Positions 2,054 to 8,553 of a stretch of 64,000 bases of DNA are shown here, piece by piece. Under the pieces are notes generated by a model that ran no database searches, had not been told where the DNA came from, and saw only the letters and a list, made by a program, of their open reading frames with translations. Numbering within the stretch: the first letter of the stretch is position 1; each line of letters starts with the position of its first letter. Source of the DNA: Lepidodermella squamata (taxonomy: Eukaryota; Animalia; Gastrotricha); assembly GCA_047495785.1 (NCBI GenBank), contig JBLDXI010000054.1, positions 2,418,001 through 2,482,000 of the forward strand, in the 5' to 3' direction. Made by a program: the position numbers and the translations under genes.

Positions 2054-2657
2054 AAGCACTTTGATTCACGTTGAATCATTTGAAACATGAACGAAGTCTT
2101 TCTTTTACTGCAAATTTTCTTACACTTGAGATATATCAATAGTAATAATACTACGTTGACGATTGTTAAGGTGCTTTGTCGCGAATCTCGCCTGGAGAAA
2201 ATCAATAATTTCACCCAAAAAAAAACAGAAAATGTTATAGCTTGAATAACCCGGTTAAATGCATGCCGCTTATACTCTAGTTTGCTAATTTTCAAAACAC
2301 AAGCAATGTAAACCCGCGGAATTTTCCCCCGATTTTCTACGACATTTTTTTCTCGTCGCCTGTACCAAGTACAATTTGGCCCACCTTGACAATTTATATT
2401 ATAATGTATGATGCAACATACTTGTTATCTTTATTCCAGCAGATGTGAAACTTGACCTATCACTCTTTTAGAACGCGTGACAAAGATTTCGCTAGTCGCG
2501 ATCCGGAAAAATGAGAAATTTTCGTTGTTTTATTCTGGGTTAATTTTTTTAGATTTGCGATATTTATATCATTACTTGAGATGAAACTCGCTGGTATCAA
2601 TACTCATCAGGTTTGTTGTTTTAAAATATTTATCTAAAACTGGTTAAATGAAATGAA

Positions 2658-2714
2658 ATGATGATCATAGTTATCCCTGTCAGACACCAATTTGGTGATA
2701 TTTTTGGTATCTGA
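2658..2714 (+). ncRNA. Box C/D snoRNA copy 1 (snR38/SNORD1-like, single guide)
   Basis: C box ATGATGA, guide AGTTATCCCTGT, D' CAGA, D box CTGA, terminal stem tgaaa/tttca; 76 nt upstream of the acceptor at 2790. Confidence 0.85.
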
Positions 2715-2866
2715 TTTCAAATTCTTTGCTATAAGCTCATCAATTTTTTATTTTATTTTATTTTTTCGTAATTGATTTTCTCCTTTTCAGGTCATTATAT
2801 GCGCGAATGGTGATTTGAAACGTAAGGTAAATAACCGATTACATTTATAGTGAAAATAATTAGTTG

Positions 2867-2925
2867 ATGATGAACGTTATCCCTGTCTGTATGTCAAATC
2901 TGTAGACACAATTCCTCGTTTCTGA
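2867..2925 (+). ncRNA. Box C/D snoRNA copy 2 (double guide)
   Basis: ATGATGA-ac-GTTATCCCTGT-CTGT...AATTCCTCGTTT-CTGA; 75 nt to acceptor. Confidence 0.9.
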
Positions 2926-3117
2926 CATTATTTTATTGAATAGTTGTCTTATGAATGGATTTTTTTCTCGCATCAGCTTTAAATACTTGCTATTTTTCAG
3001 GGTTAATTCAATACGCTTCAATGGCTTCTCGAAAGCGGCCCTGCTAAAACCACAGCTAATAGAAGGTAAGTAATGTCCTTGTTTGGTCTGAACTCTGAAC
3101 AGCTCTCAAACCGTTTT

Positions 3118-3173
3118 ATGATGAACGTTATCCCTGTCTGTAAATTCATGGAGACACAATTCCTCGTTTCTGA
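3118..3173 (+). ncRNA. Box C/D snoRNA copy 3 (double guide)
   Basis: Same boxes and guides; 73 nt to acceptor. Confidence 0.9.
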
Positions 3174-3337
3174 TTTCTCGATTTAACGTCGAATTCATGA
3201 ACCTTGCACTAACTCATCGGCTAATTTATTTATTTCTTTTACCCAGAAATGCGAAGATGGCTGACTGGCTGATGGCTACAATTTATAAATCGAGTGGTGA
3301 GTTATAGCCAATTTTTATTAGTTTACGATAGAATTCG

Positions 3338-3394
3338 ATGATGAGCGTTATCCCTGTCTGTATAACATCTGTAGACACAATTCCTCGTTTCTGA
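3338..3394 (+). ncRNA. Box C/D snoRNA copy 4 (double guide)
   Basis: Same boxes and guides; 69 nt to acceptor. Confidence 0.9.
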
Positions 3395-3666
3395 TGTTTC
3401 TATCCACCTCAATATTTTGAAAAAAATATGCGGGTTCATTAATTTGAAAATATGCTGTTTCAGGTATTGTTCGATAGCATTTCGCTGCTGGCAGAAGTTG
3501 GAGATTTCTATAATTTGTCCACTAATGATTCATTATTTCCTTGATTGCTAAGTTTTAATTTGTGAATTTCAGATTTGGAAACCTCGTTTTTATCTCGAAC
3601 TCGTTATCGCCAGCTCTTGAAAGGTAATAAAATATCATGGTTTTCTCGTCCCTTCATTTTTCGATA

Positions 3667-3723
3667 GTGATGAGCGTTATCCCTGTCTGTATAAAATCTG
3701 TAGACACAATTCCTCGTTTCTGA
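3667..3723 (+). ncRNA. Box C/D snoRNA copy 5 (double guide)
   Basis: C box GTGATGA, both guides, CTGA; 77 nt to acceptor. Confidence 0.9.
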
Positions 3724-3909
3724 ATTTGGATATTTCTATTATTCCTCCACTTATGATTTTATAGCTTCCGGAGCTATAAATTTAATTTTTTTTATTTCAG
3801 ATTTGGAGCCTCTCAAACTTCAAATCCCTCTGTCCTCTTGAACTGGCTGTCCCGGCTATTGAGAGGTAGTTGAATTCAGTGTTGCTCGTGAAACCGTGAA
3901 GCTTTGATA

Positions 3910-3968
3910 ATGATGAGCGTTATCCCTGTCTGTATCTAAAATCTGTAGACACAATTCCTCGTTTCTGA
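3910..3968 (+). ncRNA. Box C/D snoRNA copy 6 (double guide)
   Basis: Same boxes and guides; 72 nt to acceptor. Confidence 0.9.
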
Positions 3969-4135
3969 TACTTATAGCTCAATATTGCTCTGATATCTGA
4001 TCTACATTTGCCTAATCCAAATATTTACCCCATTTTTCAGGGCATGTGCGGTGGTTTTGCGGTGGGAAGTCCAGTTCAACGTTTGAATGAAAGGTGAGTC
4101 TGAATTCTGAAATGGCAGACCTATTACGTATTTAA

Positions 4136-4192
4136 ATGATGAACGTTATCCCTGTCTGTATGTCAAATCTGTAGACAACTCTGTAATTCTGA
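4136..4192 (+). ncRNA. Box C/D snoRNA copy 7 (28S guide intact, D-box guide replaced)
   Basis: GTTATCCCTGT retained; D guide reads ACAACTCTGTAATT before CTGA; 77 nt to acceptor. Confidence 0.85.
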
Positions 4193-4369
4193 ATTCTAAC
4201 TAGCACCAAAATTCAAAAATCAATTTCTTAACGGCAACTTTCTTTAATGGGCGATTTTTTCCATTTCAGAAATTGCGCGCTTTTCTGGAGGCAAGAGCAT
4301 GGTCGAGCCTATTTCTGTCGATTACAAGGTGATTTTCTTAACAGTATTTATGGCTTTTAACTTTCTTAG

Positions 4370-4426
4370 ATGATGAGCGTTATCCCTGTCTGTATCAAAT
4401 CTGTAGACACAATTCCTCGTTTCTGA
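4370..4426 (+). ncRNA. Box C/D snoRNA copy 8 (double guide)
   Basis: Same boxes and guides; 75 nt to acceptor. Confidence 0.9.
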
Positions 4427-4589
4427 AGAAATTAAAAAAGATCAGGCTAAATCATTTTCTATTTATAACCTATCTTATGAATGGTTTCATTTCGTTTTCA
4501 GAATCTTCCAGCAGCAGCGAAATCAACTCGGCCAAATGTGCTAAAAGAGGTGAGTAACATCTTCAGATTTTCCCCTGGGCTTTCTGATC

Positions 4590-4645
4590 ATGATGAGCGT
4601 TATCCCTGTCAGTACAACCATGTTGACAAAATTCCTCGTTTCTGA
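4590..4645 (+). ncRNA. Box C/D snoRNA copy 9 (double guide)
   Basis: Both guides; D'/C' region GTCAGTA..TGTTGAC shows a compensatory change relative to GTCTGTA..TGTAGAC; 75 nt to acceptor. Confidence 0.9.
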
Positions 4646-4837
4646 TGTTCCTCTTATCAAAAAATTATTAATATTTATTTTCATTTTGAGATTAAATTTC
4701 ATTTTGGGTTCGTTTTTCAGAAGCAAACTGTAACCACTGAGCCATTCAGCCGCTACAAAATCGAACCGGGAAATATCGAGACTTGGCTGCTGTCTTGTTA
4801 GGTAAGCACGATTCATACCCAATCAGCCATAAATTTG

Positions 4838-4893
4838 GTGATGATAGTTTTGTAGATCTGTAAATTCATGGAGACAAAATTCCTCGTTTCTGA
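4838..4893 (+). ncRNA. Box C/D snoRNA copy 10 (18S guide intact, D' guide replaced)
   Basis: GTGATGA-TAGTTTTGTAGAT-CTGT...AATTCCTCGTTT-CTGA; 78 nt to acceptor. Confidence 0.85.
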
Positions 4894-5076
4894 AAAGAAT
4901 TTCTCCCTATACTTTGTTACTCGGATTAATTTTTGGGATCTTTGGTAATCAGAATTATTTTTGTTTTTCAGTTCTGGTTTCGAATTATCTGATTCACGGC
5001 TGGATCGAATCGGCGTGAAAAGTCAGGACAATGTGAGTTATTTTAGGCGTTTTTGTTTGGGTTTAGTTCTCGCCAT

Positions 5077-5133
5077 ATGATGAGCGTTATCCCTGTCTGT
5101 ATAAATTCTGTAGACACAATTCCTCGTTTCTGA
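5077..5133 (+). ncRNA. Box C/D snoRNA copy 11 (double guide)
   Basis: Same boxes and guides; 77 nt to acceptor. Confidence 0.9.
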
Positions 5134-5321
5134 AGTTGAAGATATCTATTTTTCTCCCACTTTAAGATTTACCATATTCTGGAGCTACACATTTTTATTT
5201 TGCATTTCAGATTTGGAAGCCTCTCGAACTTTTCCCTGTTTCCTCGTGAACTCGTTGTCCCAGCTGTTGAGAGGTAATTGAATTTCTATTCTTTTCTCGT
5301 GATCCCTTGAAATTTTCGATA

Positions 5322-5380
5322 ATGATGAGCGTTATCCCTGTCTGTATCTAAAATCTGTAGACACAATTCCTCGTTTCTGA
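5322..5380 (+). ncRNA. Box C/D snoRNA copy 12 (double guide)
   Basis: Same boxes and guides; 76 nt to acceptor. Confidence 0.9.
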
Positions 5381-5540
5381 GTAAAAATCTTTTGATATAG
5401 TGGAGTCTAGAATTGAGCTTTTTCAATAATTTTTCATCAAATTCTCGATTTTTCAGGTTCTCATACTACAAAGCTACGAATTGCGGCACAAATTTGATGT
5501 AAGTTTTTATGAATTATTTAAGATTTCTTCGTCCAAGTTG

Positions 5541-5596
5541 ATGATGAACGTTATCCCTGTCTGTAAATTCATGGAGACAAAATTCCTCGTTTCTGA
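5541..5596 (+). ncRNA. Box C/D snoRNA copy 13 (double guide)
   Basis: Same boxes and guides; 85 nt to acceptor. Confidence 0.9.
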
Positions 5597-5781
5597 TAAA
5601 CAATGACCATAGCTTTCTTCCATCAAACTGATTTCAGATGTTATCGTATTCTTCATGACTAAATTTTTGTAATTTTTGCAGGCGTTTCAATTCGAGTTTA
5701 ACCGAGAAGACGCTGTGCTACGTAACCGTCCCCTAAAATCGTAAGTTGATCGAATAGTTTTCAAGCTGTTCTGTGCGATCT

Positions 5782-5839
5782 ATGATGAACGTTATCCCTG
5801 TCTGTATGAAAATCTGTAGACACAATTCCTCGTTTCTGA
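5782..5839 (+). ncRNA. Box C/D snoRNA copy 14 (double guide)
   Basis: Same boxes and guides; 75 nt to acceptor. Confidence 0.9.
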
Positions 5840-6001
5840 ATATTTTCGAAATCCAACTTATTTCATGGATTATCATGGAATTATTTTTGTTAATCGAATT
5901 TTATTTTTTTGCAGAACGATCGAACATTGTTGCAGACCGTCGATGCGGTATTAGACAAAGGTGATTTTTTTGCCTCTCAATTTGCCCTAGTCATAGATTT
6001 C

Positions 6002-6060
6002 ATGATGAACGTTATCCCTGTCTGTATCTAAAATCTGTAGACAAAATTCCTCGTTTCTGA
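6002..6060 (+). ncRNA. Box C/D snoRNA copy 15 (double guide)
   Basis: Same boxes and guides; 68 nt to acceptor. Confidence 0.9.
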
Positions 6061-6325
6061 TGTTTCTATCCACCTTAATATTTTGAAAAAGGTACGCGGG
6101 ATTGTTAATTAGAAAAATTATTTTTCAGGTATTGTTCGGTAGCATTTCGCTGCTGGCTGGAGGAGGCCGCCAATGTCACAACGTGTTCTGATGGCCCAGG
6201 TTACGATTTTTAAGATGGAATACTCGCATTATGTTTTTGCTGATATCATGTTTCGGCACTGCTAAATTTGAGTCGAAAAATTTAATTTCTAGATTTATTT
6301 TTTGGAAAATAATTGAAACTTGACA

Positions 6326-8553
6326 ATGGCGTCAGTCGTTCCTCACCTTGCCTCGCCGAACTTGTCGGGCGAAAAAATTCGCAAATTGAACGATATCGCG
6401 TACCACATTCGTATCCACTCGATTCGATGCACAACCGCCGCCGGCTCTGGCCACCCTACCTCATCGGCCTCGATTGCCGACCTCCTATCGGTCCTGTTCT
6501 TCGACACGATGGTCTACTCGCAGCAGGACCCTAGCAACCCGGCTGCTGATCGTTTCATCCTATCGAAGGGCCACGCGTGCCCGGCGTTGTACGGCGCCTG
6601 GGTTGAGGCCGGGTTCTACCCGGAGTCGGAGCTGGACAAAGTTCGATCGTTCGGATCTGACCTCGAGGGCCACCCGACCCCGCGTCTTCGTGAAATCGAT
6701 GTAGCCACCGGGTCACTGGGACAGGGTCTTTCGGTAGCCGCTGGTATGGCCTATGTTGGAAAGTACCTGGACAAAGCGCCTTACAAGGTATTTATTATAG
6801 ATCTTTATCTATTTATTGAATATTTTTCAAGAAATCCTGCTTAAAAATCTAAAAATTGAATAATTATTGCCCCTTGAAATTAATTCAATATTTTTTTCAG
6901 GTCTTTTGCATCATTGGTGACGGTGAGTCTCAAGAGGGCTCAATCTGGGAGGCCCTCTCCTTTGCCAGCTTCTACAAACTCGACAATTTGGTGCCTATTT
7001 TCGACGTGAACCGCCTCGGCCAGTCCGACCCGACCATGCTGCAACACAACATGGACGCCTACCGCGCCCGAGTCGAGTCGTTCGGCTGGCGGGCTTTCAT
7101 CGTTGACGGCCACGATGTCGTCTCAATCTGCAGCGCCCTGCGCGAGGCCCGCAACGGCGGCATCCCGACTTGCATCCTCGCGAAAACGTTCAAGGGCCAC
7201 GGCATCCCCGATATCGAAGATGTTCTGAACTGGCACGGCAAGCCGCTGGCTAAAGACCAGGCGCATAAGGCCATCGAATTTTTGAAGTACCGCATGTCCT
7301 CGGCCGAGGCTGCTCCGTCGGGCTCGCACGGCCTGGTCGCCACCGCCCCGACCTGGACCGTCCCGCCGCCGGTTGATTTCCCCCATTTGACCCTGTCCGA
7401 GGCCCCGAGTTACAAACTGGGCGATAAAGTCGCGAGCCGTAACGCTTACGGAACCGCCTTAATCAAACTAGGCACTGCCTCTGACCGCGTCATGGTCTTT
7501 GACGCTGATGTCAAAAATTCGACGATGACTATCGGATTCAAGAACAAATTCCCAACCCGTTTTGTCGAGTGCTTCATCGCTGAGCAGAATTTGATCGGAG
7601 CGGCTATGGGTGCTGCGTGCCGCAACCGAGCTGTTGTCTTCGCCGGGACATTCGCGTGCTTCCTGACCCGTGCTTTCGACCAGTTGCGCATGGGCTGCAT
7701 CTCCCAGACGAATTTGAACGTCATGGGCTCGCACGCTGGTGTTTCGATCGGGGCGGATGGCCCGAGCCAAATGGCTCTCGAGGATATCGCCATGTTCCGA
7801 TCCCTGCCTACCTGCACTGTTTTCTACCCATCCGACGCTGTTTCGACCGAACGAGCGGTTGAGCTGGCCGCCCAGACTAAGGGCTTGACGTTCATCCGAA
7901 CCACCCGAGGCGCTACCCCGGTTATCTACAAGAACGACGAGCCGTTCCATGTTGGCCAGGCGAAGGTTGTTCGCCACAGCGCGGGTGCTAAGTGCGTGGT
8001 GATTGGCGCCGGTGTCACTCTGGTCGAGGCGCTCAAGGCCGCGGATGAGTTGGCGAAATCTGGCATCGAAACAACGGTTATTGATCCGTTTACGATTAAG
8101 CCGATCGACGTTAAGACGATTGGTGATGCTGTTAAGGCGGCTGGCGGCCGTTTGGTTGTTGTCGAAGACCATTACGCTCAAGGTGAGACTAATTTATTAT
8201 ATTCGATTTTTTGAAATTTTGAAATTCAGAACATTTATAATTATAATTTAAAAAATTTGAAAAAATTCAATTTATATTTTGGTAATTTCTTAAATTTTTT
8301 TCTAATAATTTTATTCGTTTTTGTAAAATCCCTCCTTAATTTTAAATTTTTTCCTAATTTTTAAGGTGGCATCGGCGAGGCTGTTTTGTCAGCTTTGACG
8401 TTCGAAACTTCGCCGCCTGTTCAAATCACGGCTGTTCAACACCTGGCCGTCCGCGAGGTGCCGCATTCCGGCCCTGAGGAGACGATTCTCGCGCATTACG
8501 GCATCGATTCCGGTGCTATCATTGCCGCGGTCAAGAAAGTTGTTGCCGCTTGA
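6326..8553 (+). CDS. TKT: Transketolase, paralog 1; exons 6326-6787, 6901-8182, 8366-8553
   Basis: [42 protein letters not shown] motif, [26 protein letters not shown]; canonical splice sites give a continuous animal-type TKT. Confidence 0.95.

Follow-up and report, generated by a model that had tools for sequence, protein, structure and literature searches.

The window, that is, the whole 64,000 nt stretch of Lepidodermella squamata DNA analyzed here, carries 15 compact box C/D snoRNA units on the plus strand between positions 2658 and 6060, each measuring 56–59 nt from box to box. The 5' half of a unit consists of a C box (RTGATGA), 2 nt, the D' guide and a degenerate D' box (CTGT or CAGT), and the 3' half consists of a spacer of 7–10 nt, a C' box (TGNNGA), 3 nt, the D guide, a single T and the D box (CTGA). 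A C box of the form ATGATGA or GTGATGA and the terminal CTGA are found in all 15 copies. The internal boxes are degenerate throughout, with CTGT, CAGT or CAGA as D' (at the right spacing of 7–10 nt) and TGTAGA, TGGAGA or TGTTGA as C', and the terminal stems are weak or absent. The guide strings GTTATCCCTGT and AATTCCTCGTT have 14 and 13 occurrences, respectively, in the window, every one on the plus strand within positions 2670–6055; shuffled sequence gave about 0.03 and 0.07. The array was missed by Tandem Repeats Finder, since conservation is confined to about 57 nt in each 230.

Both guides are present in 12 of the 15 copies, namely copies 2 (2867..2925), 3 (3118..3173), 4 (3338..3394), 5 (3667..3723, with GTGATGA as its C box), 6 (3910..3968), 8 (4370..4426), 9 (4590..4645, with CAGT as D' and TGTTGA as C'), 11 (5077..5133), 12 (5322..5380), 13 (5541..5596), 14 (5782..5839) and 15 (6002..6060). 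The remaining three, also on the plus strand, have one guide each. Copy 1 (2658..2714) carries the LSU (D') guide, with a longer pairing of 12–13 bp and CAGA as its D' box, and has no SSU guide. In copy 7 (4136..4192) the LSU guide is intact and the SSU guide has been lost, with AACTCTGTAATT in place of the D guide, and in copy 10 (4838..4893) the SSU guide is intact and the LSU guide has been lost, with GTTTTGTAGAT in place of the D' guide. Copy 1 is the most classical snoR38-like member of the 15. An earlier note on this DNA had described one double-guide snoRNA at 2867–6060. The D' and D guides and the assignment of the boxes hold for 12 of the 15 units, so the double guide stands, but the single unit does not, as that range spans copies 2–15; the note had overlooked that the 15 copies form an array spread over the introns of a non-coding host.

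The snoRNA bodies share 89% identity between copies, and their 60 nt flanks 60–61%, the same as shuffled sequence. Both guides are invariant over the 12 double-guide copies, the spacer between D' and C' occurs in nine forms, and the exon flanks are not conserved from one repeat unit to the next. In an array of this kind, gene conversion restricted to the snoRNA bodies could give the same picture as purifying selection.

Host gene and introns

Each of 15 introns contains one snoRNA copy. From exon 2 to the poly(A) site, the host gene extends over 2791..6266 on the plus strand, with 15 short exons (36–160 nt) and 14 introns of 167–183 nt. The probable end of exon 1 is 2612, followed by a GT at 2613. 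Run X1, which is considered to be RNA-like because of its GT..AG joints, shows seven such joints across snoRNA-bearing introns, several loose ends that spell junctions, and an A10 loose end behind position 6266. The joints confirm the introns of copies 3 (3066–3246), 4 (3297–3463, where a loose end suggests an alternative acceptor near 3573), 5 (3624–3800), 6 (3866–4040), 9 (4550–4720), 10 (4802–4971) and 14 (5741–5914). The splice of the copy 2 intron (2827–3000) is supported by a loose end, as is that of copy 8 (4329–4501), where the loose end spells the exon-exon junction. The introns of copies 7 (4094–4269), 11 (5033–5210), 12 (5274–5456), 13 (5499–5681) and 15 (5961–6128) are predicted, and that of copy 1 (2613–2790) is putative, with its acceptor 76 nt after the snoRNA; all are on the plus strand. 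Across all copies the snoRNA lies 36–52 nt from the 5' splice site and 68–85 nt from the 3' splice site, and spacing of this kind favours the processing of intronic C/D snoRNAs.

The spliced host RNA is 1026 nt long, has 11–17 stop codons in each frame, and its longest ATG-initiated ORF codes for 64 aa. It is the product of a spliced, probably polyadenylated, non-coding snoRNA host gene of the GAS5/UHG/dUhg type, and the array provides a clean example of selection acting on only the intronic payload of a host gene. Possible marks of a 5'TOP transcription start are a TATA-like run (2393–2402) and a C-plus-pyrimidine tract (2431–2447), but an X1 contig starts as early as 2412. Exon 2 is preceded by an X1 loose end of 33 nt, the last 14 nt of which are identical to positions 2599–2612 of the window, directly before the GT. 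A spliced leader was considered as the source of this loose end and rejected: given the match to 2599–2612, it more likely stems from a normal exon 1 or from a paralogue. A transketolase gene neighbours the host gene.

Predicted targets on the two ribosomal subunits

In the 12 double-guide copies the D' guide forms 11 Watson-Crick pairs with LSU ACAGGGAUAAC, which places the middle G at +5, and the D guide forms 11 Watson-Crick pairs with SSU AACGAGGAAUU. Counting five bases upstream leads to the middle C of CCC from the D' box and to the C of CGTT from the D box. The corresponding Rfam consensus sequences are AACgAGGAAUuCC at model positions 1602–1614 of SSU_rRNA_eukarya and AcAGGGAUAAC at positions 2820–2830 of LSU_rRNA_eukarya. 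On L024, an rDNA contig that is yeast-numbered by its 18S and 25S starts, the +5 targets fall at 18S position 1572 and 25S position 2815, in agreement with the two Gs named in the earlier note and with the published yeast sites. The LSU target G lies at the peptidyl-transferase centre and corresponds to G2815 of yeast 25S and G4362 of human 28S, and the SSU target G corresponds to G1572 of yeast 18S, 3 nt from m7G1575. Yeast modification maps assign 18S Gm1572 to snR57, m7G1575 to Bud23 and 25S Gm2815 to snR38, so that the two ribose methylations are served by separate snoRNAs, as the note had stated (PMC5199042, PMC5699541). In the Drosophila map the LSU site is present as 28S Gm3348, with guides CD6a-c, and there is no 18S Nm between Gm1621 and Am1806 (PMC11014333).

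Targets were read on the Rfam consensus and on the rDNA of eukaryotes other than this animal. The source pool comprised 88 eukaryotic rDNA contigs found in 'bacterial' assemblies; G+C content and the 11-mer count covered all 88, and the complementarity scan covered about 30 of them, restricted to loci with a G+C of ≤0.50. Each standard guide had a single perfect 11 bp site in every scanned contig holding the target region. The short rRNA probe strings were confirmed by the Rfam alignments and by the arithmetic leading to 1572 and 2815. A guide of 11 bp is near the low end of the length range, and the Neurospora snR38 homologue is likewise listed with a D' guide of 11/0. The sense strand of the approximately 30 eukaryotic rDNA contigs offered no convincing conserved target for the substituted guides of copies 7 and 10 or for the D side of copy 1. 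The D side of copy 1 does give a recurrent 11 bp match to rDNA, which was rejected as a target as it falls on the antisense strand of the rRNA. A scan of viral contigs with the LSU target string gave no match.

Homologues and competing explanations

Ten copies of this double guide, with the C and D boxes in register, were detected on seven metagenome contigs, representing at least four other eukaryotes. All 10 have a C box upstream and a CTGA one base past the D guide, neither box having been required by the search pattern; since the pattern did demand both guide cores, their invariance across species is in part a product of the search. All are sense-strand and lie in introns of eIF4G-like or DEAD-box genes, with eIF4G-like introns hosting the double guide in three of the other lineages, a recurrence that ties the guide to a translation-factor gene. 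These homologues come from different samples and differ in their spacers, D' boxes and host genes, and the one on contig L009 has a canonical D' (CTGA) and C' (TGAGGA). The double guide is therefore not special to this genome, and the lineage-specific chimeric guide proposed in the earlier note is not supported. No paper describing a pairing of G2815 and G1572 guides was found in the literature searched, which likewise yielded nothing of relevance on the guide sequences or on the targets of ceN61.

Three other explanations have to be considered. The units could be a decaying repeat of snoRNA pseudogenes or retro-copies that lie in introns by chance and give rise to no functional RNA, which would fit the unusually high copy number of fifteen and the scrambled guides of copies 7 and 10, with their lack of a conserved target. 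This is very improbable, given that boxes and guides are intact while the flanks have diverged to random-level identity, that each copy occupies an intron of its own, at a constant distance from the acceptor, in a host that is transcribed and spliced, that the copies lack poly(A) tails and target-site duplications, and that homologues are conserved in other organisms. A recent, lineage-specific fusion of snR38-type and snR57-type guides is given equally little credence: yeast does have two separate snoRNAs, and a single-guide form is retained in the array as copy 1, but the pairing is found in at least four other sequence types that differ in spacers, D' boxes and host genes. Furthermore, the window copies gave no match to the snR57 family (RF00474) at E-values up to 10, and the homologue on contig L008 scored 17.7 bits, where the gathering score is 50. 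Judged from the sequences compared, a recent chimera confined to this genome is contradicted.

It is also conceivable that the LSU (D') guide alone works, and that the 18S pairing is vestigial or serves a non-methylating role, such as transiently chaperoning pre-18S around the Bud23 site, in which case there would be no 18S Gm. Animals can evidently do without this modification, the Drosophila map having no 18S Nm there and the equivalent human site not being known to be methylated. In addition, the SSU pairing is just 11 bp, copies 1 and 7 would work without an SSU guide, and the consensus of Caenorhabditis ceN61, in the part available, differs after the C' box. However, the D guide adjoins the canonical C/D pair, and this half of a C/D snoRNP is normally the more active one; the 18S G in question is also methylated in yeast. 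A single base separates the D guide from CTGA in the window and in 10 of 10 metagenome copies, and this constancy means that +5 always falls on the same 18S G. A role limited to the LSU site is considered unlikely, though it retains some plausibility.

The explanation that we favour, and consider likely, is a tandem array of 15 intronic box C/D snoRNA genes in a non-coding host, 12 of which carry guides for both an LSU and an SSU site. From its sequence, the RNA belongs to the snR38/SNORD1/snoR38 type, in compact form, and combines this with the guide function that yeast keeps in snR57. We infer that it accumulates as a small RNA, assembles into a snoRNP and brings about 2'-O-methylation at both Gs. 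Splicing and debranching, the usual route for intronic snoRNAs, would release each copy from its intron, after which it would be cut back to about 60 nt and incorporated into a fibrillarin snoRNP. The D' guide, paired with its LSU target, would then direct 2'-O-methylation at the G2815 equivalent, and the D guide, paired with its SSU target, would do so at the G1572 equivalent.

More tentatively, and with somewhat more doubt than confidence, the array may represent an unannotated double-guide form of snR38 that is conserved in several invertebrate lineages, had its ancestral host in an eIF4G intron and specifies an 18S Gm three bases from the Bud23 m7G, and that has here been transferred to a dedicated non-coding host and multiplied to 15 copies. 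Such an 18S Gm has so far been mapped only in fungi; the fly map lacks the predicted modification, and it is not known in human. An active 18S guide would mean that a ribose methylation beside the m7G of the 40S head has been retained or regained in some animals, and this would add a data point on lineage shifts in rRNA modification maps and guide pairings. The general understanding of how box C/D snoRNAs act would be unchanged.

Comparison with known snoRNA families and hosts

At gathering thresholds, Rfam returned no match in the window. In permissive mode, the best match for most copies was snoR38 (RF00213), at 22–42 bits, below the gathering score of 45, with copy 1 reaching 42 bits; a double-guide homologue on contig L006 scored 47.2 bits, above the gathering score. 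The array copies are best filed as snR38/snoR38-type snoRNAs with a second guide. The RF00213 family includes snR38, SNORD1A-C, snoR38Y and CD6a-c, and the core of the D' guide, GUUAUCCCUGU, agrees letter for letter with the conserved core in its Rfam consensus. The LSU target is shared (yeast Gm2815, human Gm4362, Arabidopsis Gm2805 and fly Gm3348), family members and window copies are both intron-encoded, and the Neurospora member has an 11 bp D' guide, as seen here. The window copies differ from the family in their length, 56–59 nt box to box compared with a model of 91 positions, in having CUGU as D', weak terminal stems and an added 18S guide, and in their number, 15 here compared with three in human (SNORD1A-C) and three in fly (CD6a-c).

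With yeast snR57 (RF00474) the window copies have in common the predicted target, 18S G1572, three bases 5' of m7G1575; snR57 is, however, a separate snoRNA and, beyond the guide, there is no sequence relationship. No snR57 outside fungi was found in the open literature searched. A compact snR38-type RNA is already represented by Caenorhabditis ceN61 (RF01647), which shares the D' guide and has a C' region (UGAgGAcAAA) resembling that of the window copies. The homologue on L009 scored 37.8 bits with this family and copy 13 scored 26.3 bits (compared with 22 bits for snoR38), the gathering threshold being 60. The nematode family probably lacks the 18S guide, because the visible part of its consensus after C' reads cAAAagACU and differs from AAUUCCUCGUU in the window copies.

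The host resembles GAS5, UHG, SNHG16 and Drosophila Uhg in being spliced and probably polyadenylated without a meaningful ORF, the introns holding the conserved product, and it shares with the SNORD115/116 arrays a single snoRNA in each intron, at a constant distance from the acceptor. Hosts of the GAS5 type carry different snoRNAs within one gene, and SNORD115/116 are orphan guides, whereas all 15 introns of the present host contain variants of a single rRNA-directed snoRNA. The feature is a real, conserved and ordinary kind of gene. Service to both subunits is already known in Drosophila, where snoRNA:CD22b is listed for 18S Um586 and 28S Cm3412/Um3415, and CD53a for 18S Gm393 and 28S Gm2774 (PMC11014333); in these cases, as predicted here, a single box C/D snoRNA is matched with a site on 18S and one on 28S, although the pairs of sites differ.

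Anatomy of the snoRNA units and their rRNA targets

The array is an snR38-type box C/D snoRNA that carries a second guide, directed at the yeast snR57 site, and has been amplified within a non-coding host gene. Reading of the sequence, together with a box search of the window, revealed 15 units of 56-59 nt each (copies 1-15, numbered 5' to 3'), a high number of snoRNA copies for one host. The unit runs RTGATGA, 2 nt, GTTATCCCTGT, CTGT, a 7-10 nt spacer, TGNNGA, 3 nt, AATTCCTCGTT, T and CTGA. In this compact box C/D snoRNA, the C and D boxes are canonical and D' and C' are degenerate. The two 11-mers picked out in the earlier note, the D' guide (LSU) and the D guide (SSU), were borne out: they occur 14 and 13 times in the window, every one on the + strand and within 2670-6055, against about 0.03 and 0.07 occurrences in shuffled sequence.

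Both guides are present in 12 of the 15 copies. In copy 1 (2658-2714, +) the LSU guide is longer, the D' box is CAGA and no SSU guide is present, while the D guide of copy 7 (4136-4192, +) and the D' guide of copy 10 (4838-4893, +) differ from the standard. In copies 7 and 10 one guide is kept and at least 6 of the 11 positions of the other are replaced, with the boxes and spacer intact. A search for a conserved rRNA target of these new guides found none, and they may be directed at another RNA or belong to decaying copies.

The Rfam eukaryotic SSU consensus, read on an SSU fragment from a viral-contig scan, is AACgAGGAAUuCC at model positions 1602-1614, and the LSU consensus is AcAGGGAUAAC at 2820-2830, read on L024, a eukaryotic rDNA contaminant inside a 'bacterial' assembly. 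Complementarity was scanned in about 30 eukaryotic rDNA contaminant contigs, all with G+C at or below 0.50. Every one contains a single perfect 11-bp site for the D' guide, and each contig whose 18S region includes the exact 11-mer contains a single perfect site for the D guide. Since the 18S and 25S of L024 start at 2050 and 4601, the fifth guide bases upstream of D and D' face 18S 1572 and 25S 2815, respectively. Published yeast maps give Gm1572 (snR57), m7G1575 (Bud23) and Gm2815 (snR38) (PMC5199042; PMC5699541), and this agreement means that the guides, +5 targets and yeast equivalents proposed in the earlier note are correct. For Lepidodermella squamata itself, the target check rests on the near-universal conservation of both rRNA strings in other eukaryotes. 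L024 is filed under Planomonospora, and its 18S and 25S coordinates equal the yeast numbering exactly. Eukaryotic LSU rDNA is carried, as contamination, by at least 88 contigs catalogued as bacterial or archaeal (L013-L095 listing).

A dedicated non-coding host gene

Contigs of an RNA-like sequencing run (X1) skip 167-181 nt with GT..AG ends at seven snoRNA-bearing introns, so the run behaves as RNA. Further exon junctions can be read from several of its loose ends, and one loose end terminates in an A run behind 6266. From these junctions, and from matching splice signals for the remainder, the host gene comprises 15 short exons at 2791-6266 (+). Between them lie 14 introns of 167-183 nt, whose donors are GTRAGT-like and whose acceptors read (T)nCAG, and in each intron the snoRNA lies 36-52 nt past the donor and 68-85 nt ahead of the acceptor; copy 1 has matching geometry provided that 2612 is the last base of exon 1. 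The spliced RNA (1026 nt) has stops in every frame and no ATG ORF longer than 64 aa. This dedicated non-coding snoRNA host gene is flanked upstream by an RBR/Ariadne-type E3 ligase gene (1-2053, +, ending near 2053) and downstream by a transketolase gene (about 6328-8214, +), the family of which was confirmed by an atlas search.

In one X1 contig, a 33-nt 5' piece is joined to exon 2 (window 2583-2612 and 2787-2791). The final 14 nt of this piece equal window 2599-2612, directly before a GT, and its upstream part differs, which suggests 2612 as the end of exon 1 and the existence of a paralogous host gene or allele at another place. Between the E3-ligase stop and the first snoRNA there is also an 80-nt X1 contig (2412-2491) with a depth of 48, several-fold above the host exons, which could be a first exon, 3' UTR or small RNA. 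Alternative splicing is seen at the 160-nt exon 3464-3623, where a loose end links 3296 to about 3574, omitting the first part of the exon; other X1 contigs read through it.

Constraint within the array

The snoRNA bodies of copies 2-15 share 89% identity, against 60-61% in the 60-nt flanks on each side, a value equal to that of shuffled sequence and the reason why Tandem Repeats Finder did not detect the array in the window. The 12 double-guide copies show no variation in the two guides, the D box or the single spacer base ahead of it, and display nine forms of the D'-C' spacer and variable bases just 5' of each duplex. The pattern fits selection on boxes and guides, to which gene conversion restricted to the snoRNA body could have contributed.

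Homologues and comparison with known snoRNAs

A metagenome scan for both guide cores, 10-40 nt apart and with no box required, returned nine contigs. Two (L002, L007) are boxless, a number close to chance expectation by rough estimate. The other seven hold ten copies (L001, L003, L004 with three, L005, L006, L008 with two, and L009). In every copy a C box stands shortly before the D' guide, CA(A) follows a C'-like TGNNGA, and a single base separates the D guide from CTGA; terminal stems are clear in L001, L003, L004, L005 and L006. None of these boxes, motifs or stems was part of the search pattern. The copies come from different samples and form at least four sequence types, with CTGA, CTTA or CATA as D' and varying spacers, and that of L006 scores 47.2 bits against snoR38, above the gathering score. 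The double guide is therefore a snoRNA type that has been inherited and conserved in several eukaryotes, including at least some animals, and the lineage-specific chimera envisaged in the earlier note does not stand.

All ten copies lie in sense orientation within introns of protein-coding genes. Pfam identified eIF4G-like hosts in three metagenome lineages, from domains on the exons adjacent to the snoRNA introns: the MIF4G end in L004 (1-2356), the eIF4E-binding domain in L005 (150-1207) and MA3 in L009 (30-1056). This suggests that the eIF4G host is older and that the non-coding host in L. squamata is derived. The host in L008, an AT-rich contig, is a DEAD-box helicase (Pfam) with a duplicated exon; beside its two double-guide copies, Rfam gives weak hits for U30-like and snR60/Z15-like box C/D snoRNAs (178-270 and 461-551), and the locus resembles a mixed cluster of snoRNAs within a DDX-type gene.

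No match in the window reaches the Rfam gathering thresholds. At permissive settings, most copies match snoR38 best (RF00213, the snR38/SNORD1/AtsnoR38Y family), at 22-42 bits against a threshold of 45, with copy 1 highest; weaker matches are ceN61, TtnuCD17 and DdR6, which have the same D' guide. RF00213 guides At Gm2805, Hs Gm4362 and Sc Gm2812 (older numbering), and has been dated to the last eukaryotic common ancestor (PMC3511168). The LSU site also appears in other maps, as Dictyostelium CD6 and as 28S Gm3348 (CD6a-c) in the Drosophila rRNA Nm map (PMC11014333). The Caenorhabditis ceN61 consensus has the D' half and C' region in common with the window copies but reads cAAAagACU after C', and the nematode family probably lacks the 18S guide.

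The 18S site is the less common part of the pairing. Human 18S is not known to have an Nm adjoining m7G1639. In the open literature searched, snR57 was confined to fungal work and no paper was found on the guide pairing or guide-plus-box strings; this blank is weak evidence of novelty, since the search did not reach supplements or databases. The snoRNA is likely to be active at the 18S site. In fly 18S, Nm is not mapped at any position between Gm1621 and Am1806 (PMC11014333). A single C/D snoRNA for both subunits is ordinary, and the significance that had been attached to this feature is lost, as fly CD22b and CD53a are each assigned one 18S and one 28S site (PMC11014333).
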